Sequence record: NC_031039.1
Strand: one strand, 5' to 3'
Length of the DNA stretch: 64,000 bases
Below, piece by piece: positions 38,301 to 52,701 of this stretch (positions are counted from its first letter, which is position 1; every line of letters starts with the position of its first letter). The notes below the pieces were generated by a model, which searched no databases, was not told where the DNA came from, and saw only the letters and a list, made by a program, of their open reading frames with translations. The position numbers were made by a program, and so were the translations under genes.

Positions 38301-38462
38301 TTAATTATTTAGAATAAAGATTCCCAAAATTTGATCTTTCTGTAGATCAAAATCTCCATTAAACCGCCCGTTATTTCTGTCTACTAAGAAATTCTGTGGT
38401 GATAATAATGAGAAATGTTCTTTCATCTTATTATCAAATACTGGAATGATATTCAATACGTC
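38301..38462 (-). CDS. rpoC: nvRNAP beta' N-terminal subunit, exon 2 (DVLNIIPVFDNK...ILNN*, 53 aa)
   Basis: Follows the intron omega-G; supplies the last Asp of DYDGD; spliced protein is 373+53=426 aa. Confidence 0.9.
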   Translation of the reverse strand, partial: DVLNIIPVFDNKMKEHFSLLSPQNFLVDRNNGRFNGDFDLQKDQILGIFILNN

Positions 38463-39359
38463 CATTTAGTTTATATAAGAGCGCAACCTCTCATACCATT
38501 GGGCTAACATTTCTGTTAGAATCAGACTATATCTTAACTATTAATTCTATTACCAAATTAATAGTTCCTCCCTTTTCCATTTAAAGCTTTCGCTACCTCA
38601 TTAGCTTAGGCTGTACTCTACTCACTTCCAGATACCGTATTTCTCGAATATCCGTGTTTTCGATAGTCGTTGAACCTTACTATACATTGCTCCACTTAAA
38701 TGTATTTAAAACCATAGCCTTTATAGGAATTTCTTTGACCTCTAGCTACTCTTGCTATTGCATCTATTTTACAGTCAAATTCTTTAGCAACCTCTTTTAC
38801 ACTTTTATAGGTACTAATTATTTCCCCTGTAGTTAGATCTAACTTAGCTATAGGTTTATATTTTGCTTTAGTAGCATTATTGATATTTCCTAAACCAGTT
38901 TTTTGTCTGTGATTACAGTTTTCTTTTGTAGTAGACCATTCTAGATTAGATACACAATTATTAGTTTTTATACCATCTTTATGATTTACTTCTGGTTTAT
39001 TTTCTGAATTCTCAATAAATGCTTCTGCTACTAATCTGTGTATTTTTTTGTAATAACGTTTTTTATCCCTATATAATGTGACTACAAGATAACCTTTTCC
39101 ATTATTTGTGGAGGAAAGAATTTTTTCGTCTATTATTCGAATACTGTTTAGTTTTCCACTAACTTCTCGTTTAAGTGATTTCACTAAACCTGTATTACTT
39201 ATTTCATATAGACCTTCAAATCCTATTATTTCTTTCCATATTAGTTCCATTCTAATTAGCTTCTTTCAGAGCAATGTATAGTCTTGGCTGCTGGTTGGCA
39301 TATCTTAAATGACTTAGCTTCCCAGACAATTAAAGAGGTTTAAAGACGGCAATCGCCTT
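38463..39359 (-). mobile_element. Group IA self-splicing intron (897 nt)
   Basis: P1 GACGGT/GCCGTC with U.G at the 5' splice site; P TTGTCTGGGAAG, Q AACCAGCAGCCAAG, R GTTCAACGACTA, S AAGATATAGTCT; terminal G. Confidence 0.93.
38696..39250 (-). CDS. Intron-encoded NUMOD4-HNH homing endonuclease
   Basis: IWKEIIGFEGLYEISNTG (NUMOD4), HRLVAEAFI, VNHKDGIKTNNCVSNLEW (HNH), NUMOD1/IENR1-like tail. Confidence 0.93.
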   Translation of the reverse strand: MELIWKEIIGFEGLYEISNTGLVKSLKREVSGKLNSIRIIDEKILSSTNNGKGYLVVTLYRDKKRYYKKIHRLVAEAFIENSENKPEVNHKDGIKTNNCVSNLEWSTTKENCNHRQKTGLGNINNATKAKYKPIAKLDLTTGEIISTYKSVKEVAKEFDCKIDAIARVARGQRNSYKGYGFKYI

Positions 39360-40478
39360 ACCGTCATAGTCGCCTGATAATGCAGACAATAAGTTATTAC
39401 TAATTCCCAGTGTTAAGTCTTTATAATCTTTTTTAATAAGACCAATCTTTAGGTATAAAATACTACCAATACTAATAGTAGGGTTACGGTTAAGTAAAAA
39501 TGTACAACCACCTTTAGTTTTTGTAATTAGTTCTTCCATATAGTTATATAACTCTTGATTAAATCCTAGTATGCCTTTTTCCCAAAATTTTAGTGCTTCA
39601 TTATAATTTATACCTTTTACTTTACTGATAAGATTGATAAGCTGAAACTTATAAAGTTCTGCGAACGTTTTATAAGGCATAGCAACTTCATCAATAGGAT
39701 GACCAATTAATGGTGTAATAACATTTCTGGCACTAAAATTGATTCTAGAACCCATAATATTCTTTCTTAGAAATCCTTTTTTACCTCGAAGGTATTCACT
39801 AATAATTCTTGTTAGGATATTATTGGCATAGAATTGCATATTATAAAGTAATGGTAATAATAGTAAATCAATGCTGTCATCAGATACTACACCCTCATTA
39901 ATCTGGTTTATGTACTCAATAACAAAGTTGTAGTAATTATTAATCTCATCAAATGCCAATACTTTTCCTTTACTCCCAGTTAATAATGTAGCTGGTCTAA
40001 GCTTGTGTGAAAATACTGGTAGTTTATTAATAAAAATCTTATCATGATTTTCAATTAAGAAATCATATTCTTTTTGATATTTCTTTTTATCAGTGTATTT
40101 TTCAAGGAGATCATCAAAATTATCCTTAAACTTTACTAACCCGATATAATCATCTTCCCCAATTTCTTCTGTTAGATCAATATTCTCACCGTTTTGATCA
40201 ATAGACTGTTGGTAGTTAATAATTTTATTAATACTTGGAATACATTTTTTGATGATAGTAAATAAGATTGGGTTGATAATATAATAAGGTTCAATATTAA
40301 TCCATCCAATAGTATCTATATCCTTATCATCATCGTCTTCATTATAACTACCAAATATCCTTTCTGAGTAAATACCATCATCAGAGAATTCATGATTTTC
40401 AATTGGATTAGCTCTTGTAATTAAATTCTCCTCATTGTAAATCTCATTAAAATCGATTAAGGATAGTTTCTTCCCCAT
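39360..40478 (-). CDS. rpoC: nvRNAP beta' N-terminal subunit, exon 1 (AR9 gp270-type)
   Basis: DGIYSERIFG, KKGFLRKNIMGSRINFSARNVI, LLNRNPT, ALSGDYDG. Confidence 0.93.
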
Positions 40479-41923: not shown

Positions 41924-42466
41924 CTAACCTTCCTTTTTGTAGGTATTATAAAGAGATGTTATAATATTAAATTCATTATCAACATAAGCTAAATCACCTA
42001 TATCATCTATTGCTTTTTTAGCATCAACTTCATAATCATCCATCCAACCAACTTGAAGGTCATTGGCTTTTTCTAAATTAAGAATTATTTTCTTAATTCT
42101 TTCAATTTTCTTTGCAGTACCTTTATCTAGTTGGTCAAGATATTTTATTTTTAAAAGTATCTTTTTACCAAACTCATAGGTTTTATTTTGAGCCTCAACT
42201 GCATCCTCAAAATCCCCTTTTAAGAATGTTTCAATATCTTCTAATAAGTTAAGAATAACATCTGTTTGTTCATCAACATCATGTTTTAATTCATTAATAT
42301 CTTCAAGTTTGTCTTCTATTTCTTTAGTTTTACTAACAATTATACCATTCTTATTGGCAGATATATGACCATCAAATCGATTCATTATCAACTGTCCGGG
42401 CTGAGAGTCTTTTGCAAATTCTTCAGAAAGAGGTTGATATGCGAATCTTCCATTATAAGCCATCAA
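41924..42466 (-). CDS. Fibre-associated coiled-coil protein
   Basis: N-terminal GQ...DGH...SKTKE module plus heptads. Confidence 0.7.
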   Translation of the reverse strand: MMAYNGRFAYQPLSEEFAKDSQPGQLIMNRFDGHISANKNGIIVSKTKEIEDKLEDINELKHDVDEQTDVILNLLEDIETFLKGDFEDAVEAQNKTYEFGKKILLKIKYLDQLDKGTAKKIERIKKIILNLEKANDLQVGWMDDYEVDAKKAIDDIGDLAYVDNEFNIITSLYNTYKKEG

Positions 42467-42999
42467 TATCCACCTCCAATTTGATCTAAACCAGATTTGT
42501 TACTTATTTTTTGATTAGTTATATCATTAGCCAAGAATTTCATTTCATCTATAGTTGCTTTTAGTTTAAGAATATCTTTCAGATTATCAACTATAGGATC
42601 AAGAAAAGGACGAATTTCTTTATATTGAAAATCCTTCAATTCTTTACAAAAATTATCTATTAATGTCATTAAACTCTCAACATCTGCATCCAACTCTGTT
42701 AAACTGACATATAATTCTTCTGCCCTATCTCTAACTTTTTTAGTATCATCTTTTAATACATCTATAGAGTTTAGTAATCTTTCAATTTCTTCAGCTAATT
42801 CAATAAACTTTTTAACAAGCTTATTTTTATAACTGAGGAGGGCATTTGCCCTAGCCTCAAGTTCTTTTGTTTTACTTTTATACTTACCATTATGCTTAAT
42901 TGTTACATGCCCAGTCTTCTTATCAAGAATGATTTCTCCTTCTTTAGCATTAAACATATTTTTCTCAAGCAATGGTCTTATTACAATTCTCCAATCCAT
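42463..42999 (-). CDS. Fibre-associated coiled-coil protein (paralog of the previous gene)
   Basis: GEIILDKKTGH...SKTKE module plus heptads. Confidence 0.7.
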   Translation of the reverse strand: MDWRIVIRPLLEKNMFNAKEGEIILDKKTGHVTIKHNGKYKSKTKELEARANALLSYKNKLVKKFIELAEEIERLLNSIDVLKDDTKKVRDRAEELYVSLTELDADVESLMTLIDNFCKELKDFQYKEIRPFLDPIVDNLKDILKLKATIDEMKFLANDITNQKISNKSGLDQIGGGY

Positions 43000-43013
43000 T
43001 GATTATCACCCAA

Positions 43014-46000
43014 TCAAGTGTTATTTTTATACCAAATTGTCTCACCAATAAGGCTTGAGTTGTTCTGAAGACCATCCATTATTTGAAGAGCTAATTCTGT
43101 CTTTCCAGTGGTAGTATTTCTAAGTTCTTCAATTCTAACTCGTATACCACTAGTAACAGTACCAATTTCTTCTAATGAATTTTTAAATTGGTCGATAACG
43201 CTTAAATCAGTAAAGTCTAAATAAGATAAGATGGATTTAATTGTATTTACATCATTTTCAATTTCATAATTTCTTTTTTGTAGATCAGTTACTTTTTCCC
43301 TTAATACATCTTTCATAATTTTAAGGTCATTGATTCTCTGTTCATTATTTTGCAGAGAGATATCAATTGCAACTGCTCTTTTTTCTGACAATGTTAGTAA
43401 TTCCTCTAATTCCTTAGTTTTACTAATTAGATATCCATCATCATAAATTGAAATATGTCCTGTATCACGATCAACTACCATCTCACCATCAATTGCCTTT
43501 ACTTTGTTTTGTTCAGTTAATGGTTCTAAGCTGATTCTTAGCGGTCCAATTGGTTCTGGTATCTTATCAATAATTGTAAATACTACATATGAAGTGGCTC
43601 TTAGACCATTAATCTTCTTAATTGCTGTTACTGATAATTGATAACTATTAGGATCATTTAACAGAGTACCTAATTTAAATGATCTACCGTTAAGTTTAGC
43701 TTCAAATTCATTATCTTCTTTATAAGATGGATTATCCTCATAAGAATCAATATCTGGTCTTGCTGATTCTTGAATAACTTCAGGTAATACACCGACAATT
43801 TTTGGAGGTTCAGGAGGAACTGAATCTAATGTAAATTTAACTATAGTTGTAGCAGTTAAACCATTAAGACGTTTTTTAGCAGTAACAACTAAAGTATAAT
43901 CTCTTATCTCAGCTACTTCATTATATATTGGGCTCCCAATTTCATATGGTTCTCCATTTAAGGTTGCAGTAAAATCGACACCATAAACATACTGGACAGT
44001 TGGTGAAACTGTTAAATATGTTGATACACCTTCTTTAAAGCCCATAACAACAGGTGGTTCTGGTGGTAATTTATCAATATTTGTTATTGCTTTAGTGTCT
44101 TCAACAAAATAACCATTAGGATCTTTGTATCTAGCATGAATAATACAGTTATCAGTTACATCAAACGGCTCACTATATGATTGCCATTCTTCAGCACTAT
44201 CAATTTTATATTCAAATTCTGAGCCATAATTTGGATACCTAATTGTAATAGTATCCTTAATACTCGGTATATACTCTGGGTCTGCTAATATTAATGGTTT
44301 TTGTTCTTCATCAGGATTAAATACGATAAAATTAACATCAGACATTGAAACCATAAAATTAGATTTCTTTCTCCGAACAACAAGTAAATTATAATCTCCT
44401 GAATCTATAATAGGTGTTCCCATAACATATGGAAGACCATTTAAATATGCATCCTCATTTTCATTACCATCAACATCGAGATCATTTGTTAACGAAAATG
44501 TAAGAGATATTTCAATTTTATTTTCAGGATAGTTTGGATCGGTAGCTGTTACAACTAATCTATATGCGCCCTTGTCTCTAATTGTATCTTCACGTTTAAA
44601 AGAACTTAGAAGGGTTCCATTTAAATATAATTTATGCTCATACTTTAACCCTGCAAAAATATCCCAAGTAGGTTGAACTGCCACATCTTTTCCTCTAAAG
44701 ACTTGTCCTTCTTCAATAATAGAACCTGTTAATTTATTCTTGATAATAAGCTCTTTTCCAGTTATATCAATAGATCCCGGCATTAATTTAAAGTTTCTAA
44801 CTACCATTTTATAATTTGTCGGAAAGTTATGATCTGAAATTTTAACTTCTACTACATAATCTCCGTATTCAGTTAGAATATCTTCGTCATCTGTTGGATC
44901 ATATGACCGTCTAGTACCATTATAAGTAATCCATGACTCATAATCTAGATTAGATGGAAGTTGTCCTGTATACCAAAATGGTTTAACTTGAATCCCTTTA
45001 TAGACATCGTTATTTTGAATAGGTATATCTGTAATAGCGTTAACAATTACAAGAGCAATTTCATTCATATCAACTTTTTTATCAACAATTGAGAAGTGTC
45101 TCACTACAGTTGTAGTGTTGGTAGGATTATCTATCTCTGTGATAATCAATTCTAACTCATAGTCACCCTTATTTGATAACACTGTGAGATCTTTCATAAA
45201 ATCAAAATCTTCTCCATCATATCGCAATGTATAATCTACATCACAATCTTCTGGCTCATCCCAAGTTGGTAATACTAATTCATCTTCGAAGATTCGTCCT
45301 TCATTGATTTCAGTCTCATCAAAATCATTATAAATTTCAATATCAAGATTAGTGTTAATTGGAGCTATAATAAAATTACGAATAAAAGTCTTATTCTCTC
45401 CAGCACCATTTTCTAAGACAACAGTAATAGAATAATTACCATAATCTGTATAAACATCATTATTTGGTGTAAAAGGAACTGTAGATTCATCTCGCTCTAA
45501 TGTATAACTTATTATAGTACAATCCGCTGGAATTGGTTGCCAATATGGTTTAACTTCTTGATCTTTAAATATTTTTCCTTCAGAAATGATAGTGTTTGGT
45601 GCTTGAGGAAGATTTACATCAATAAATTCCATTTCATAAGTATCAAGATCAGTTATCTTTTCTATAATCTCGAAATTTACACTAATTTCCTTTTTATTAT
45701 CTGGGTAATTCTTATCAGTCAGATTAAATTTAATTGTATATTGACCGATATTAGTTAATGTATCACCCTTTTTATATGAAATTAAACTATTATTATACGT
45801 AACAGTTATTCCATATGTTATATTAGAATCTTCTTTCCAAGTTGGTTGAACTTTAGCCTCAAATTGAGATCCTTCACTAATAGGTTTAGTAGTAATTGCA
45901 TCTCTGAGATCTAAGACAAGATCATTCCAGTCTTCAGGGGCGGCAGTAACTTCAAAGTTTATAATACCTGTAGCTTGGTTGTCTGGATAATTCTTATCAG

Positions 46001-47330
46001 TAATAAGATAGCTAACTTGATAAAGACCGGCTTGACTATAGGTATTAGATTTAACTAAAGATCCCTTGGGAGTACTATTAACATTGTAGTTAACAGTAAT
46101 ATTTGTACCATCTATTTCTTCCCAATAAGGTTGAAATTTACCAACAAATTTAGAGCCTTCAACTATTTGAGAGGATGTTAATAAATCCTTCAGAGTAAAG
46201 CTAATATTATCTAAATCTTTTTTAGGAGGAAGTACATAGAATGTAAATTCATTCGAATCTCTAGTATTAGTCGGATAAGCTTTATCTTTTGCTGTAATAA
46301 TAGCTGAATATTTACCATTTTCAGATAAAGATTGAAGCCTACTGTAAGGTATTTCAATTCCATCTTTTTTTAATTTAATAGTATAAGCAATAGAACTATC
46401 ATCTGCATTCCAATCTAACTTAACTGAATTTGAAAATCTATTTTCAGTTGTAATATTAATATTAGTATTTTTATCAATAAGTGTAAATTTTATACCACTT
46501 AAATCTTTAGGAGATGAACCTTCAAAAGCAAGAACATAAACTCCATCTGTATCTTGGTGGGAGATAGTAGAGTTGGAGTCCAAGTTAAGTGCTGGTGCAA
46601 CACCAATTGTATCGTTATCTGCAACAGACTGAGCAAATGCGCCATTTATGTTAATACGATACACAATATGACCAAAATCAGGATAAGCAGAACGTAACCA
46701 GTAATAATAGTTTGAACTAGAATTTAATGATGAATGCTGATATTTACTTTGTGTAACGGCTTCATCAGTTGGTTTAAGAATACGATTAGATGAAGAATTT
46801 AAATATGGAATTGTTGTTCCTTCTTTTCCACTTGAGCCTGCTAATCCCATTTCTGTCATACTAAATAGGAATACATTATCTTGAACAGTCTCTACTCCAC
46901 CACCGTCAACTGATGGAACAATTGTTTTCAAATCAGTCTTTAAAATTCTATTTGCAAAATCACTACTAAAATTAGTTAAGAATCCATCTTCTGTATCATA
47001 GCTATTTCCATTAGAACCAGAAGAAGGAGGTGTATCAGAAGAATTAGTTGCTGTAAACCAAGGTGATGGTTTTGTTGAATTCAACCATTGACGCATATTG
47101 GAATAAAGCCATCTGTTGTTTCCTGATGTTTGCCTATTTGTATTACTATTACTAGGTTCCTTAGCATCAAATGTCTTAATAGAGATGATATTATTAGTCA
47201 TCAAAGTAGCACTATTTGCTGGATAACCTGCTAAATCTTTACCAACCAATTTCCAAACAATTGGTTTTCCATTATATTTAGTATTAGGATCCTTTACTAA
47301 GGATCCTAACGGTAAGTCTTTAATTATCAT
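43014..47330 (-). CDS. Large fibre / receptor-binding protein: DUF6273-like lectin domain, Ig-like repeats, C-terminal coiled coil
   Basis: NNRWLYSNMRQWLNS...WLRSAY...GVAPALNL; ~95-aa repeats with W..P and GxY motifs. Confidence 0.75.
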   Translation of the reverse strand: MIIKDLPLGSLVKDPNTKYNGKPIVWKLVGKDLAGYPANSATLMTNNIISIKTFDAKEPSNSNTNRQTSGNNRWLYSNMRQWLNSTKPSPWFTATNSSDTPPSSGSNGNSYDTEDGFLTNFSSDFANRILKTDLKTIVPSVDGGGVETVQDNVFLFSMTEMGLAGSSGKEGTTIPYLNSSSNRILKPTDEAVTQSKYQHSSLNSSSNYYYWLRSAYPDFGHIVYRININGAFAQSVADNDTIGVAPALNLDSNSTISHQDTDGVYVLAFEGSSPKDLSGIKFTLIDKNTNINITTENRFSNSVKLDWNADDSSIAYTIKLKKDGIEIPYSRLQSLSENGKYSAIITAKDKAYPTNTRDSNEFTFYVLPPKKDLDNISFTLKDLLTSSQIVEGSKFVGKFQPYWEEIDGTNITVNYNVNSTPKGSLVKSNTYSQAGLYQVSYLITDKNYPDNQATGIINFEVTAAPEDWNDLVLDLRDAITTKPISEGSQFEAKVQPTWKEDSNITYGITVTYNNSLISYKKGDTLTNIGQYTIKFNLTDKNYPDNKKEISVNFEIIEKITDLDTYEMEFIDVNLPQAPNTIISEGKIFKDQEVKPYWQPIPADCTIISYTLERDESTVPFTPNNDVYTDYGNYSITVVLENGAGENKTFIRNFIIAPINTNLDIEIYNDFDETEINEGRIFEDELVLPTWDEPEDCDVDYTLRYDGEDFDFMKDLTVLSNKGDYELELIITEIDNPTNTTTVVRHFSIVDKKVDMNEIALVIVNAITDIPIQNNDVYKGIQVKPFWYTGQLPSNLDYESWITYNGTRRSYDPTDDEDILTEYGDYVVEVKISDHNFPTNYKMVVRNFKLMPGSIDITGKELIIKNKLTGSIIEEGQVFRGKDVAVQPTWDIFAGLKYEHKLYLNGTLLSSFKREDTIRDKGAYRLVVTATDPNYPENKIEISLTFSLTNDLDVDGNENEDAYLNGLPYVMGTPIIDSGDYNLLVVRRKKSNFMVSMSDVNFIVFNPDEEQKPLILADPEYIPSIKDTITIRYPNYGSEFEYKIDSAEEWQSYSEPFDVTDNCIIHARYKDPNGYFVEDTKAITNIDKLPPEPPVVMGFKEGVSTYLTVSPTVQYVYGVDFTATLNGEPYEIGSPIYNEVAEIRDYTLVVTAKKRLNGLTATTIVKFTLDSVPPEPPKIVGVLPEVIQESARPDIDSYEDNPSYKEDNEFEAKLNGRSFKLGTLLNDPNSYQLSVTAIKKINGLRATSYVVFTIIDKIPEPIGPLRISLEPLTEQNKVKAIDGEMVVDRDTGHISIYDDGYLISKTKELEELLTLSEKRAVAIDISLQNNEQRINDLKIMKDVLREKVTDLQKRNYEIENDVNTIKSILSYLDFTDLSVIDQFKNSLEEIGTVTSGIRVRIEELRNTTTGKTELALQIMDGLQNNSSLIGETIWYKNNT

Positions 47331-47348
47331 AATTTCACTCCCTTATTA

Positions 47349-49148
47349 TTAACCTTCAATAGTTGGGATAACTGTTGATTTAGCATCTCCTTCAGATACT
47401 CCTCCAATAACTGGAGTGTCAGGTGGTGTAGTATCAATAATATCAACTATTTTGGATGTAATATAGCTTTCATAGTCATCATCACCATCTAGACTTCGTA
47501 CATAGATTATACAATTTTTATAGATTTTAACTGGATCTCTATACCAACGCCAATCACCATCATCAATCCGATATTGAAATTTCATTGTAGGATCTTTCGG
47601 GAAATTAACAGTGGCTATAGTTCTATAGCATAATTCATTTGGATCCAAAGTGATCGTATATCTATATTTTATTTTCTTATAGAATTCTACAGTCGTATAT
47701 TCTGAATATAGACCATTTGAAAGTTTATGTGCTTTAGATTCAATACGATATATGCCCTTTTTAGAGTATGTTTGTTCCTCTGGTATTTGCACCCATTGAG
47801 TATCATTTAAATCTTTTTTATAATAAACTTTTGTTACTGGTACACAACCAGATTGTACAATTATTCTTGGTGAAACAGGGTTAGGGAATCTACCTATGAG
47901 TCCGTAATCTTTACCTTGATAATCTTTATCAATTCTAATAATTGGTGGATCAGGTGGATCATTGTCAATGGTAAATACACCTTTTTTAGTAAGTGTTTTA
48001 TGGTTAGTATTTTTTCTAATTGTAACAACAATTGTATAAGTACCATTTTCTACTAATGGAGTGCCTAGAGTATATGCTTTACCATTAATCTTTGCTTCAT
48101 ATAACGTACAACCACTAGGAACATTAATAGTTGGATAACACGCCGCTAAATATACTTTGTTGTATTCATCATATATCCTTGATGTAACAGCTTTGTCAAA
48201 GATCTTAAAATCAGGAGCAGGTGTTGGATCTTCATATATAATTCTTGAAGTTGCAAAATCCATTAATGATGGTGTATCTTTATTAGTACATCTTACTGCA
48301 ACTTCATAAGTGCCATACTTATTAATTTTATAATAATTAGTAAAAGTAAAGTTACTAGTATTACCATCAATATCAGTGTATCTTTGAGCAGTTATATCAT
48401 ATTTAAATTTAGATGTATCTTCTTTCCAAAAAACAGTAATAGGTTTGTAAACTGTATAAGTTTCTGGTGTATTCGGAATTAAGATATTCTTATTAGATCT
48501 CTTGTCATACAGATCAATATTAGGTTTTGTTTTATCTGCAATAGATCTAATACCTGTAATATTTACTGTTGCAGATCTAGAGATTTTGTCTGGTGTTTTT
48601 AATTTTACTTTAAATTTAATTGGTCTTCTATAAGTATTATGAACAGCTAGATACCAAGAACCTTTATACCAGCCACTCCAATCTCCATTACTAGTACTAT
48701 TAGCCCACTGATATGTTCCAGGAATAGAAACCCATTTCTTTGGTGTCCATTTTTTAGATAAGTCAGTAGCATCAAATAATTGTGCATTAGTTTGAGACTT
48801 AGGAGCCGCTTTAGATCCTTTTGATATTTTGGTATAAGGTCTTGTACCATAGTTCATGACACCATCATACTTATTCCCATACCAATACCATGCCGGATTA
48901 ATCCATTGCTCTTTGTAGTCATATTTTACTGTAGTTAGAGTCACTTTCATATTTTTCTTAATTGTAACATAACTACTTCCAATAGAGGTTCTTTTTCCTC
49001 CTGCAAGTGTATAGTATTTTTCATTTCCCTTTGGAACTACACATTGAACTTTTATATCTCCATTGGAAAGAACTTGTTTTACAATTAAATAGAAACCGGA
49101 TTTAGAACCCTTAATTCTATCTCCAACTTTATAACTAGTTGTAGCCAT
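47349..49148 (-). CDS. Fibre protein with Ig-like repeats
   Basis: NGKAYTLGTP, DNDPPDPP, FQYRIDDGDWRWY repeats shared with 43014-47330. Confidence 0.7.
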   Translation of the reverse strand: MATTSYKVGDRIKGSKSGFYLIVKQVLSNGDIKVQCVVPKGNEKYYTLAGGKRTSIGSSYVTIKKNMKVTLTTVKYDYKEQWINPAWYWYGNKYDGVMNYGTRPYTKISKGSKAAPKSQTNAQLFDATDLSKKWTPKKWVSIPGTYQWANSTSNGDWSGWYKGSWYLAVHNTYRRPIKFKVKLKTPDKISRSATVNITGIRSIADKTKPNIDLYDKRSNKNILIPNTPETYTVYKPITVFWKEDTSKFKYDITAQRYTDIDGNTSNFTFTNYYKINKYGTYEVAVRCTNKDTPSLMDFATSRIIYEDPTPAPDFKIFDKAVTSRIYDEYNKVYLAACYPTINVPSGCTLYEAKINGKAYTLGTPLVENGTYTIVVTIRKNTNHKTLTKKGVFTIDNDPPDPPIIRIDKDYQGKDYGLIGRFPNPVSPRIIVQSGCVPVTKVYYKKDLNDTQWVQIPEEQTYSKKGIYRIESKAHKLSNGLYSEYTTVEFYKKIKYRYTITLDPNELCYRTIATVNFPKDPTMKFQYRIDDGDWRWYRDPVKIYKNCIIYVRSLDGDDDYESYITSKIVDIIDTTPPDTPVIGGVSEGDAKSTVIPTIEG

Positions 49149-49159
49149 TTATTTACCTC

Positions 49160-49759
49160 CTAACCTATAACTATTACTTTGTATTGATTTGGTGATGGCA
49201 CAGATAAGAAATTTATTCTTATTGTGTTTGCATCCTCAATAGAAACATTAGTCATAACTAAATCTTTTGTTTCTTCATCCCATACACTTACATTAATGTC
49301 ATCAGTTCCCAAATTATGTCTTATAACAAAGCTATGGTTACTACTATTACCAATTAGTTCTGAATATTTTAAGACTCCAATTAAGCTACCATCTTCACTT
49401 TCTCTTATATCATTTAGCTTTCTACGAACATCCCCATCTAAATCACTTTCGGGAATCCCATTAATAGGTTTAGAATATTTAGAATCCCAATCTAATACTT
49501 TAATATCGTTTAAGTGACGTTTACTATCTTCTACATGATTTTTTACATATTCAATGTTTGCCTTACTCTGAATATCTTTTATTAAATTAGTTAATTGAGA
49601 CAACTCTATTCCTGAAGAATTTATGACAGAAAGGAGGTTAAATAACTGTTCCATATTCTTTTCCATATATGACAATCTATTATTTAATTCTTTATAAATG
49701 TAACCATTCTGTACATCATTTGATTCTATCCGCATCTCGTTAGGCATAATAACTCTCAC
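49160..49759 (-). CDS. Short fibre protein (coiled coil, one His repeat, HNLG C-terminal domain)
   Basis: HVEDSKRH...WDSKYSKPINGIPESDL; HNLGTDDINVSVW. Confidence 0.7.
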   Translation of the reverse strand: MRVIMPNEMRIESNDVQNGYIYKELNNRLSYMEKNMEQLFNLLSVINSSGIELSQLTNLIKDIQSKANIEYVKNHVEDSKRHLNDIKVLDWDSKYSKPINGIPESDLDGDVRRKLNDIRESEDGSLIGVLKYSELIGNSSNHSFVIRHNLGTDDINVSVWDEETKDLVMTNVSIEDANTIRINFLSVPSPNQYKVIVIG

Positions 49760-49780
49760 CTTCTTTAATAATTTTCTACT

Positions 49781-49792
49781 TATCTATATGTT
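49781..49792 (-). promoter_or_regulatory. Late promoter AACA-N6-TA
   Basis: AACA-TATAGA-TA. Confidence 0.6.
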
Positions 49793-49819
49793 CTTTTCAT
49801 CTTAAGAACTAGAAATAAT

Positions 49820-49862
49820 AATGTAAATGAAGATAGACAAATAGCCTATCTTCATTTACATT
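49820..49862. terminator. Terminator hairpin
   Basis: AATGTAAATGAAGATAG / CTATCTTCATTTACATT. Confidence 0.7.
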
Positions 49863-49869
49863 TATTTTA

Positions 49870-52701
49870 TTAGCGGATCACTACTTTACCAATAAAGGCA
49901 GTAGGAAATTGTACTTCAATATCTTTTGTTGTATCATTGACACGAACAAGAGATGGTTGAACAGTTTCCCAGAATTCTGCATTTTGTGTATAAGCCACAA
50001 CAGAATATTCAAATGGCTCTTTAGTGATTCCATGCTCAGTAGCAAGAATTGAAACAGTAGTAGCTTCTTCAGTTACCGTTTTAGTGTAAGGCATAGAAAC
50101 ACTATTAAGTTTGTTTTGCAATTCCACTACTAGATCAGTTGCTGGAATACCTTCATCTGGTTTAGCATACTTAGCAGACCACTCAGTTTTTTGTTCATCA
50201 GTTACGTGAACAGTTTCATCAGCGATATGATTTGCACTATTAGTAAGAGCTGTAGATACAGATGCTTCAAGGTCAGTAACAGGAATACCTTCATCTGGTT
50301 TAGCATACTTAGCAGACCACTCAGTTTTTTGTGCCGCTGTTACATGGATAGTACCATCAGAAACATGGTCAGCAAAGCCATCTACAGTTGTAACAAAACC
50401 ACTTTCGAGGTCAGTTGCTGGAATACCTTCAGCTGGTTTATCATATTTGGCATTCCATTTAGAGCGTTCAGCATCTGTAATGTGAACAGTAGTATCACCA
50501 GTATGATTAGAAAGATCAGCAACAGAAGCCGCACCATCAATCTTACCTTTAAGAGCATCGGACAGATCAGTTTCTGGAATACCAGTATTAGGTTTAGCAT
50601 ACTTAGCGTTCCAGCTAGCTCTTTCTGAAGCAGTTACGTGTTTAACTGTATCAGTAGCATGAGCATTAAAGTCTGTGTTTGATACCATGCCATTTACTTT
50701 AGAAATAAATGACTGTGCCATATCAGACTCAGGAATACCAGTTGATGGTTTAGCATACTTGCCATTCCAGATAGTACGCTCTTCAGCAGTAATGTGAACA
50801 GTAGTATTATCTACATGGGTAGTTAGATCTGCCGCAGAAGCTGAACCATTGATTTTAGCCTCAAGTCCTGCTTCCAAATCTGCCGCCGGAATACCTTCTT
50901 CTGGTTTAGCATACTTGCCATTCCAAGCAATTCTTTCATCAGCAGTGATGTGTTTAACAGCATCAGTAGCATGTGCATTTAGATTTGCCTGTGTTGCCAT
51001 TCCAGCTACTTTATCACGGAAAGCAAGGGTAAGATCAGTTTCAGGGATACCATCAGTTGGTTTGACATATTTGGCATTCCAGTTACTACGCTCAACAGTT
51101 GTAATATGTTTAACAGTATCATTGGCATGAGCCGCAAGATCAGCAGAAGTAGCCGCACTATTAATTTTAGTTTTGAGATCTTTTTCAAGATCTTCTTCAG
51201 GAATTCCTGTTAATGGTTTATCATACTTAGCATTCCATTTATCACGTTCTGATTGAGCTAAGTGACGTACACTATCAGTTTCGTGTTCTAAGAAATCTGC
51301 ATTAGTAACCATTCCATTAATCTTTGTCTGTAAGCCAGAAGCAAGATCAGTTTCAGGGATACCAGTTGATGGTTTGTCATATTTAACGTTCCATTTAGAA
51401 CGTTCTGTTTCTGTAATATGGATTGTACCATCAGCCTTGTGGTTATTCCAATTTTCACGTTCTTTTTCACTAATATGGACAGTAGTATTTGAAGCATGAT
51501 CAGTAAGTTCTTTCTTAGTAGCCGCACTACCAATTTTACTCTGTACACTAGAATCCAAATCAGCCATTGGAACACCAGTTGATGGTTTTACATATTTTCC
51601 ATTCCAAGAAAGACGTTCAGCATTAGTAATGTGAGCAACTGAATCATTTTTGTGATCGGTTAGAGCTGTAGCTGTAGCCGCACCATTAATTTTATCTTGG
51701 ACAGGTAATTCTAAATCTTTCATTGGAACGCCGTTAGCAGGTTTATCATACTTAGCATTCCATTTATCACGTTCTTCGCCTGTGATATGTTTAATAACAT
51801 CGTCTTCATGATCTTGAAGATCAACTGCTTTAGCCGCACTATTGATACTATTTTGAACAATTTCAGAGAAATCAGTCATTGGAATACCAGTAGCAGGTTT
51901 ATCATACTTAGCATTCCATTTAGCACGCTCAGTAGATGATGTATGAATATCAAGATTATTAGTATGATTAGAAAGATCGGAATTTAAAGCAGATGCTTTA
52001 ATACGATCAGAAACAACTGGATCTAGATCTTTCATTGGAATACCAGTAGCAGGTTTATCATACTTATTATTCCATGCTCCACGTTCAGTTCCAGTAATGT
52101 GTCGAACTGAATCATTGAAGTGAGGATCAAACTCAGTATGACGAACAATATCTTTATCAATGAATTCAGAATAAATTTTTTTATCTGCATTGAAAAGATC
52201 AGACTTTGCAATTTTTGCAGATAATAGACTATCTACTTCTGATTTAATATAAAAACGAGAAGTATCTAGTGTTAATTTATTAAGATCTTCAATGTTTTCC
52301 AATTTAATTTTACCAGTAAAGTGTCCATCTTCAGTAATAAGAGCCTTAATAACACCTTGAGAAACAAAAGCAGCAATATTACCAGTGCTTGTATTTTCCA
52401 ATACAGTACTACCAATATTTTTAAGCATAGAGTCAGTGTTTCTAGCATGCTTTTTCTCAATAGCATCTTTAAGTTCGTCATTCATAGTGACTCCAACACT
52501 GGATTCATAAATTGGGCGTCCTGTTTCTGTGTAGCCAATAGGGTCAGTATTAGCATTACCAGAAGAATAGTTAGTACCATTCAAGGTAATTTTGGAGACA
52601 GAACTAAAGCGATTATCAGCCATTAATTGGTCAATAATTGTCTTACTCAAGCTATTTGAGCTTAATGTGTTTGTATAGAAAGAACTCAAATCATAAGCCA
52701 T
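49870..52701 (-). CDS. Long tail fibre with tandem ~52-aa His-containing repeats
   Basis: 14 units of H-x6-H-x-T-x2-ER-x2-WN-x-KY-x-KP-x2-GIP-x2-DL. Confidence 0.8.
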   Translation of the reverse strand: MAYDLSSFYTNTLSSNSLSKTIIDQLMADNRFSSVSKITLNGTNYSSGNANTDPIGYTETGRPIYESSVGVTMNDELKDAIEKKHARNTDSMLKNIGSTVLENTSTGNIAAFVSQGVIKALITEDGHFTGKIKLENIEDLNKLTLDTSRFYIKSEVDSLLSAKIAKSDLFNADKKIYSEFIDKDIVRHTEFDPHFNDSVRHITGTERGAWNNKYDKPATGIPMKDLDPVVSDRIKASALNSDLSNHTNNLDIHTSSTERAKWNAKYDKPATGIPMTDFSEIVQNSINSAAKAVDLQDHEDDVIKHITGEERDKWNAKYDKPANGVPMKDLELPVQDKINGAATATALTDHKNDSVAHITNAERLSWNGKYVKPSTGVPMADLDSSVQSKIGSAATKKELTDHASNTTVHISEKERENWNNHKADGTIHITETERSKWNVKYDKPSTGIPETDLASGLQTKINGMVTNADFLEHETDSVRHLAQSERDKWNAKYDKPLTGIPEEDLEKDLKTKINSAATSADLAAHANDTVKHITTVERSNWNAKYVKPTDGIPETDLTLAFRDKVAGMATQANLNAHATDAVKHITADERIAWNGKYAKPEEGIPAADLEAGLEAKINGSASAADLTTHVDNTTVHITAEERTIWNGKYAKPSTGIPESDMAQSFISKVNGMVSNTDFNAHATDTVKHVTASERASWNAKYAKPNTGIPETDLSDALKGKIDGAASVADLSNHTGDTTVHITDAERSKWNAKYDKPAEGIPATDLESGFVTTVDGFADHVSDGTIHVTAAQKTEWSAKYAKPDEGIPVTDLEASVSTALTNSANHIADETVHVTDEQKTEWSAKYAKPDEGIPATDLVVELQNKLNSVSMPYTKTVTEEATTVSILATEHGITKEPFEYSVVAYTQNAEFWETVQPSLVRVNDTTKDIEVQFPTAFIGKVVIR
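50100..52130 (-). repeat. Coding tandem repeat array, ~156-bp period
   Basis: Recurrent ttagcatactt/ttatcatactt...ggaatacc units; 51-bp exact pair at 50144-50194 and 50282-50332. Confidence 0.85.

Follow-up and report, generated by a model that had tools for sequence, protein, structure and literature searches.

Two adjacent genes of Bacillus phage AR9 carry complementary halves of one predicted Ig-like domain

In engineered split CnaB and other immunoglobulin-like (Ig-like) tag-and-catcher pairs, a beta-sandwich is divided at a loop; the short peptide and the remainder of the domain then reassemble, and the product is usually locked by an isopeptide bond. In chaperone-usher pili, donor-strand complementation and exchange finish an incomplete Ig-like subunit with a strand of another chain, which gives a very stable non-covalent joint in the filament (PMC9046445). 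Branched phage receptor-binding complexes, such as the CBA120 tailspikes, G7C gp63.1/gp66, and DT57C LtfA/LtfB (for DT57C, PMC10713586), contain an appendage protein with a docking site for a second one, and the resulting structure is forked. Ig-like domains as such are common on phage structural proteins, and in the known cases they are complete and sometimes added via programmed frameshifting (Fraser et al. 2006, cited in PMC7385642). The T4 protein Hoc is a string of Ig-like domains that decorates the virion (PMC10385173). The present work concerns two adjacent genes, gp275 and gp274, located in the last 64 kb of the genome of Bacillus phage AR9 (NC_031039; Takahashivirus PBS1). This stretch, which is the whole of the DNA analysed and is called the window below, is 100% identical to the record, and its base 43014 corresponds to AR9 genome base 230056. 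AR9 is a flagellotropic jumbo phage of the PBS1 group with uracil in its DNA.

AR9 encodes the N- and C-terminal parts of its RNA polymerase beta and beta' homologues as separate polypeptides, which together build functional enzymes (PMC5312081, PMC5449584). Since these subunits are split polypeptides, splitting and reassembly are not foreign to this phage. Sequence comparison indicates that gp275 and gp274 bear the two halves of one Ig-like beta-sandwich repeat of ~85 residues, one half at the very C-terminus of gp275 and the other inside gp274. A limited literature search found no account of an Ig-like domain divided between two phage gene products, and no structure of PBS1/AR9 appendages.

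Complementary halves of one repeat in gp275 and gp274

The AR9 record annotates gp275 as 'virion structural protein, contains Ig-like domain' and gp274 as 'hypothetical, contains PKD-like repeats'. Towards its C-terminus gp275 contains, in this order, a repeat R, a variant repeat R', a domain called Y (residues 493-571), and 28 more residues. The segments on which the argument turns are as follows.

47349-49148, minus strand: gp275 (BI022_gp275, YP_009283180.1), 599 amino acids (aa), Ig-like domain string, virion structural protein (annotation; AlphaFold2 model and Foldseek)
47436-47672, minus strand: gp275 Y domain (residues 493-571), by sequence alignment a paralogue of gp274 residues 1006-1086
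47352-47435, minus strand: gp275 C-terminal tail (residues 572-599), the orphan N-half, corresponding to strands A and B (R1 profile positions 1-28)
47331-47351, minus strand: gp275/gp274 junction with three TAA codons, the ribosome-binding site AAGGGAG (47338-47344), a 7-nt spacer, and the gp274 ATG
43014-47330, minus strand: gp274 (BI022_gp274, YP_009283179.1), 1438 aa (open reading frame; record annotation)
44454-44489, minus strand: gp274 acidic linker (residues 948-959), 12-17 residues long among orthologues with an identity of 0.17; predicted local distance difference test (pLDDT) score <50 at residues 952-957
44316-44453, minus strand: gp274 half-domain (residues 960-1005), the orphan C-half, four predicted strands (R1 profile positions 36-81)
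44073-44315, minus strand: gp274 Y domain (residues 1006-1086), weak CHB_HEX_C-like (chitobiase-C-like) match
43560-44072, minus strand: gp274 full repeats R1 (residues 1087-1170) and R2 (residues 1171-1257), the reference for the intact fold

The repeat was described by a profile of R1 (gp274 residues 1086-1170), built from 16 orthologues and comprising 85 positions. The last 28 residues of gp275 match positions 1-28 of this profile, and the gp274 half-domain matches positions 36-81, with no overlap between the two matches. Positions 29-35, covered by neither half, turned out to be the loop between strands B and C in the AlphaFold2 model of R1. The original prediction, made from the letters of the window alone, had placed the two segments at 44312-44483 and 47352-47435 of the minus strand and had claimed that the C-terminal segment of gp275 is the part missing from an internal repeat of gp274. 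The coordinates proved exact, being gp274 residues 950-1007 and gp275 residues 572-599 (the final 28 residues before the stop), and the complementary profile positions bear out the claim itself.

The 28-residue tail alone gives a weak score against the repeat. It forms the end of a continuous alignment, however, in which gp275 residues 513-598 (Y domain and tail) correspond to gp274 residues 1029-1113 (Y domain and start of R1) with an E-value of 2.3e-14, and for this reason its homology to the first half of the repeat is secure and no accident of a short motif. When the complete AR9 genome (251 kb) was scanned in six frames, the repeat family proved to be confined to gp274, with two full copies and the C-half, and gp275, with one near-full copy and the N-half. 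The same scan revealed no further orphan halves in the genome and no C-half in another frame.

The junction has three consecutive TAA codons followed by AAGGGAG, 7 nt, and ATG, which shows that gp275 and gp274 are truly separate genes. A fused protein with an intact domain could in principle arise via readthrough, frameshifting, or a DNA rearrangement across the 2.9-kb interval between the halves, and one circumstance speaks for recoding: in AR9 gp274 starts in the reading frame of gp275, 18 nt downstream. The shared frame appears to be due to chance. The intergenic spacers of the relatives are 13, 16, 17, 19, 20, 21, and 23 nt long, with 94 nt in one case, and because of this variation the frame relation is not conserved. 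Moreover, a readthrough product would enter the DUF6273 domain at the start of gp274, not the C-half, and would have to pass the triple stop ahead of a strong ribosome-binding site and start codon. Readthrough and frameshifting were rejected on these grounds, together with the lack of a C-half in any alternative frame. Rearrangement was rejected as well, since no direct or inverted repeats flank the 2.9-kb interval; the junctions are free of repeats, and the sole recurring 18-mer encodes a conserved inter-domain linker. Altogether, we consider production of such a fused protein extremely improbable.

An unsplit relative and conservation of the split

A full-library search with gp274 residues 856-1090 identified, in a distant relative, a protein of 1196 aa, here designated P0103, which is present on two independent contigs. 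According to the family profiles, its residues 13-100 and 417-659 map to gp275 residues 25-105 and 351-591, and its residues 683-1154 map to gp274 residues 968-1430 with an independent E-value of 1e-74. Residues 640-717, spanning the junction between the gp275-like and gp274-like parts, match R1 profile positions 1-82 and constitute one full repeat. From these alignments, P0103 is a single polypeptide whose gp275-like part joins a gp274-like C-terminal third via an apparently intact copy of the domain that is split in AR9. The DUF6273/PKD block of gp274 is absent from it. Because P0103 carries the domain unsplit, the tail and the half-domain can be regarded as the halves of one domain. We take this as the strongest evidence that the two pieces belong together, and it is silent on whether they still meet.

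In Staphylococcus jumbo phages, a single large gene encodes the Y domain, R1, R2, and the anchor module, and neither the half-domain nor an upstream gene with the tail was found in them. Given that P0103 is unsplit and that the Staphylococcus phages also have just one gene, the simplest reading is that the split is derived, not ancestral. The ancestral single-gene layout, namely a gp275-like part, Ig-like domains, and a C-terminal anchor, would then survive in P0103. In the AR9 lineage, the former single gene would have gained a block in the B-C loop that brought DUF6273 and the PKD-like array, preceded by the signals that end one gene and begin the next (stop codons, ribosome-binding site, start codon).

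Downstream of P0103 lie an Amidase_2/PG_binding endolysin gene and a piece of RNA polymerase beta', as in the order of AR9 gp271 and gp269. In the interval that follows P0103 (L021:4067-6620), genes of 218, 370, and 226 aa precede the endolysin gene, vs. two ~180-aa genes in AR9.

Close relatives were compared as 15 distinct gene pairs, which come from AR9, B. pumilus phage BpSp, and 13 relatives known from metagenomes or assemblies, in two of which the N-terminal regions diverge strongly. The gp275-family set (n = 17) consists of these pairs plus two proteins without known neighbours, both ending with the tail. All 15 pairs have the tail in the upstream protein and the half-domain, preceded by the variable acidic linker, in the downstream one, and the adjacency and order of the two genes are conserved. 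Both truncation points, whose conservation had been proposed as a check on the original prediction, are therefore kept in the relatives. The tail is found in 17 of 17 gp275-family members, even in cases where identity elsewhere in the proteins is just ~30-55%, and in 16 of them the stop codon falls 0-3 residues past it. An orthologue of gp274 with 2359 aa (P0024) was considered as a possible fusion of the two proteins and rejected: its greater length is due to more PKD-like domains, the half-domain is kept, and the upstream gene retains the tail. A scan of IMG/VR gave AR9 itself as the lone match.

The exception among the 17 is a protein of 951 aa (locus L020, 1042-3897, upstream of P0022). 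It has the same tail boundary, past which come a linker rich in Pro and Thr and ~165 residues of an unrelated domain, not the C-half. The extra domain has no family match, and the genes downstream differ from the usual gp273/gp272 pair. Since a linker and an unrelated domain can follow the tail at this point, the tail seems to be a discrete unit with a solvent-exposed far end.

The half-domain is the best conserved segment of gp274, with a mean pairwise identity of 0.68 and a length of always 46 residues, and it retains the core-facing hydrophobic pattern. The acidic linker in front of it is the least conserved. In gp275, the best conserved part is the Y domain, with a mean pairwise identity of 0.69. 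Residues D572, P576, P579, and P595 of the tail are invariant, and I581, V584, and G587 occur in ≥87% of 15 sequences. These data bear on the view that the two remnants are a neutral scar of an old insertion and have no function. The tail does evolve faster than its neighbours, as this view would have it: the mean pairwise distance is 0.55 for the tail, compared with 0.33 in the Y domain of gp275 and 0.31 in the half-domain. On the other hand, the tail maintains a length of 27-30 residues and its invariant positions across lineages whose N-terminal parts are just ~30-35% identical, a divergence over which the stop codon of a functionless tail of 28 codons should have been lost or displaced. 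The invariant length of the half-domain and its leading identity within gp274 likewise do not look like decay. A neutral scar is thus very unlikely in our judgement.

Structure predictions and docking in trans

The AlphaFold2 model of gp274 residues 855-1262 (single chain, 16-sequence alignment) has a mean pLDDT of 87. The Y domain, R1, and R2, which reach 86-96, are all-beta and form tandem beta-sandwich domains of ~85 residues, similar to the Big_13 type. The half-domain is predicted with a pLDDT of 65-79, the lowest among the ordered segments of the model; the linker alone is lower. Each of its four strands has one counterpart among the last four of R1. In the model of gp275 (single chain, 8-sequence alignment), residues 1-490 are confident, and the Y domain and the tail have a pLDDT of 35-60. 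The tail is predicted to be unstructured (pLDDT ~46-51) and is not docked in cis. Foldseek searches of PDB and BFVD with both models returned generic Ig-like domain strings alone, e.g., GhpA, SiiE, and S-layer proteins, and no PDB sequence relatives of R1-R2 were found.

A separate observation concerns the gp275 Y domain, which has a pLDDT of 35-60 despite its top conservation in the protein, compared with 86-94 for the paralogous Y domain of gp274. The low confidence may be due to the shallow alignment or to the need for a partner.

At the level of sequence families, gp274 residues 940-1262 and gp275 residues 300-599 gave zero Pfam matches, PF19077 (Big_13) included, even at E 5. PF19077 does match P0015 and P0025, two bacterial proteins that align to the AR9 repeats.

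Completion of the half-domain in cis, which would have spoken against the original prediction, has little to draw on. The sole spare sequence is the preceding linker of 12-17 residues, and this candidate was judged unlikely because the linker is variable in length, acidic, disordered in the model (pLDDT <50), and only 17% identical among orthologues.

Taken together, these results lead us to propose that gp275 and gp274 probably join in trans by rebuilding the split Ig-like domain. After translation, strands A and B of the gp275 tail would be laid against the open side of the half-domain in gp274, and the sandwich would be restored non-covalently. The C-terminus of gp275 would thereby be tied to gp274 just before the part composed of Y, R1, R2, and the anchor, and the pair would mimic the single-chain layout of P0103. 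The gp275 arm would be held to the C-terminal anchor module of gp274, with the DUF6273/PKD part as a second arm, so that the appendage would be forked. We infer the docking itself, the forked shape, the virion position, and any binding function from the comparative evidence, which is unusually clean at the level of sequence. The original prediction went further and spoke of a fibre, a side branch, and two receptors; nothing in the analysis supports these terms, and 'fibre' and 'two receptors' are conjecture.

Several points weigh against docking. AlphaFold2 draws four strands for the half-domain in the absence of a partner. The records of AR9 and PBS1 give gp275 and gp272 a virion label and enter gp274 as 'hypothetical'. 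The correlation of the distance matrices of the tail and the half-domain (mirror-tree) is 0.47, no better than that of other region pairs (0.5-0.87). Finally, saturation of the synonymous sites and the shortness of the tail (20 codons) reduce the ratio of non-synonymous to synonymous substitutions (dN/dS) to noise, so that it is uninformative. As to the presence of a gp274-like protein in particles, the sole proteomic support is a single peptide of the homologue from Staphylococcus phage DC4 (PMC10638138).

The main rival to completion in trans draws on the same points. It holds that each half is retained for a reason of its own and that the two proteins make no mutual contact through these segments: the tail would either attach to a different virion component via edge-strand addition or act as a short spacer, and the half-domain would be stable with its four strands, packed on its neighbours. 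The virion flag on gp275 and its lack on gp274, the four strands built without a partner, the lack of specific co-variation, and the internal position of the tail in the 951-aa protein, with another domain after it, would all fit. Such separate reasons do not account for boundaries that are exactly complementary, for the occurrence of both pieces in every pair and the absence of both from the Staphylococcus clade, or for the fact that these are the sole orphan halves in 251 kb. The unsplit relative shows that a single domain once existed, and although the half-domain keeps its core-facing hydrophobic residues and tops the conservation of gp274, no other ordered segment of the model has as low a pLDDT. 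We therefore regard separate retention as rather unlikely, and reassembly of the domain across the two chains as the preferred explanation.

Neighbouring genes and comparison with known systems

The remaining features of the two genes and the next two genes downstream are listed below.

47961-48233, minus strand: gp275 repeat R (residues 306-396), a near-full copy of the family, with R1 profile positions 18-84 at residues 331-395
46575-47216, minus strand: gp274 DUF6273 domain (residues 39-252), Pfam PF19789, E 1.5e-25, 90.5 bits (cut-off 23.5)
44490-46520, minus strand: gp274 PKD-like/Ig-like domain array (residues 271-947), supported by the record note 'PKD-like repeats' and a weak PKD match; pLDDT of the last domain 81-92
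43017-43559, minus strand: gp274 C-terminal module (residues 1258-1438), a conserved N-terminal motif followed by a predicted coiled coil, paralogue of gp273/gp272
41924-42999, minus strand: gp273 (178 aa) and gp272 (180 aa), both paralogous to the C-terminal module of gp274; gp272 is a virion structural protein

The match to DUF6273 is above the gathering score, and the gp274 orthologues have the same precomputed match. A match to phrog_10993 ('Hoc-like head decoration') is confined to this region of gp274, residues 5-271. Both genes sit among late structural genes in the order gp280 ... gp277 ('tail protein'), gp276, gp275, gp274, gp273, gp272, and the endolysin gene gp271. PHROG scans of gp278-gp281 were uninformative.

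The C-terminal module of gp274 is the presumed anchor. Within 41924-43559, gp273, gp272, and gp274 residues 1258-1438 are paralogues of equal length (~180 residues), each with the conserved N-terminal motif and the predicted coiled coil. These three might form a three-chain anchor in which just one chain bears a long Ig-like string. On the other side of the pair, the 'tail protein' gp277 (943 aa) is made up largely of ~13 tandem repeats of ~50 residues each with a recurring motif containing His and Trp, and gp276 (199 aa) has a single copy of a repeat of this type. The stretch that encodes both (49160-52701) is the G+C maximum of the window, 0.38 vs. ~0.27. Further along, at 38301-40478 (gp269/gp270), the gene for the N-terminal part of the non-virion RNA polymerase beta' is annotated as a join of two pieces, and an HNH endonuclease gene lies between them. 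The intron/homing-endonuclease layout of the AR9 RNA polymerase beta' gene has been described previously.

As a tentative overall picture, a phage may have gained a new arm, DUF6273 with the PKD-like array, by insertion of a gene fragment inside an Ig-like domain of an appendage gene, and the appendage may have survived through cross-chain reassembly, in what would be an undescribed two-strand 'plug and socket'. If this is true, two virion proteins would be joined by natural fragment complementation of an Ig-like fold, unlike what occurs in pilus donor-strand exchange or through the adaptor domains of branched fibres and tailspikes. A checkable model would also be available for part of the PBS1/AR9 appendages, in which the proteins of the helical tail fibre and of the 'contraction fibre' are unassigned (PMC9266447). 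From the standpoint of protein engineering, a beta-sandwich completed by a short peptide of natural origin would be of interest as the source of a non-covalent tag pair.

Compared with Hoc-like proteins, which combine an Ig-like string with a C-terminal capsid-binding domain, gp274 ends in a coiled-coil module paralogous to gp272/gp273 and has no recognisable capsid-binding domain. The branched receptor-binding complexes rely on dedicated N-terminal adaptor domains of trimeric proteins, whereas in the AR9 proposal a rebuilt Ig-like domain would join Ig-like strings that are probably monomeric. A T4 gp10-like or XD adaptor domain was not seen in Pfam or PHROG scans of gp272-gp277.

A further parallel, which the original prediction had drawn, is that with pilins. 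It would hold insofar as the gp274 half-domain, with its profile positions 36-81 and its four strands of lowered pLDDT, looks like an incomplete Ig-like fold that would be completed in trans. It fails in the details, so that pili should be regarded as an analogy only. Pilin subunits lack strand G, at the C-terminus, and an N-terminal extension acts as the donor; in AR9, the N-terminal A and B strands are missing, and the candidate donor is a C-terminal tail. Pili are polymers that need a chaperone and an usher, while the AR9 pair would form a single hetero-junction, and no chaperone or usher genes were found in Pfam and PHROG scans of eight neighbouring proteins or in the gene lists of related loci. 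In contrast to the man-made tag-and-catcher pairs, the AR9 split occurs in nature, with the halves on separate genes and two strands in the shorter one, and a covalent lock is not apparent.

With regard to evolution, gp275/gp274 would be a gene interrupted within a domain yet working, beside the split RNA polymerase genes of the same phage. In the AR9 polymerases, each break has conserved regions of a large enzyme on either side, while in gp275/gp274 the break is inside a small domain and is filled by ~950 foreign-looking codons.

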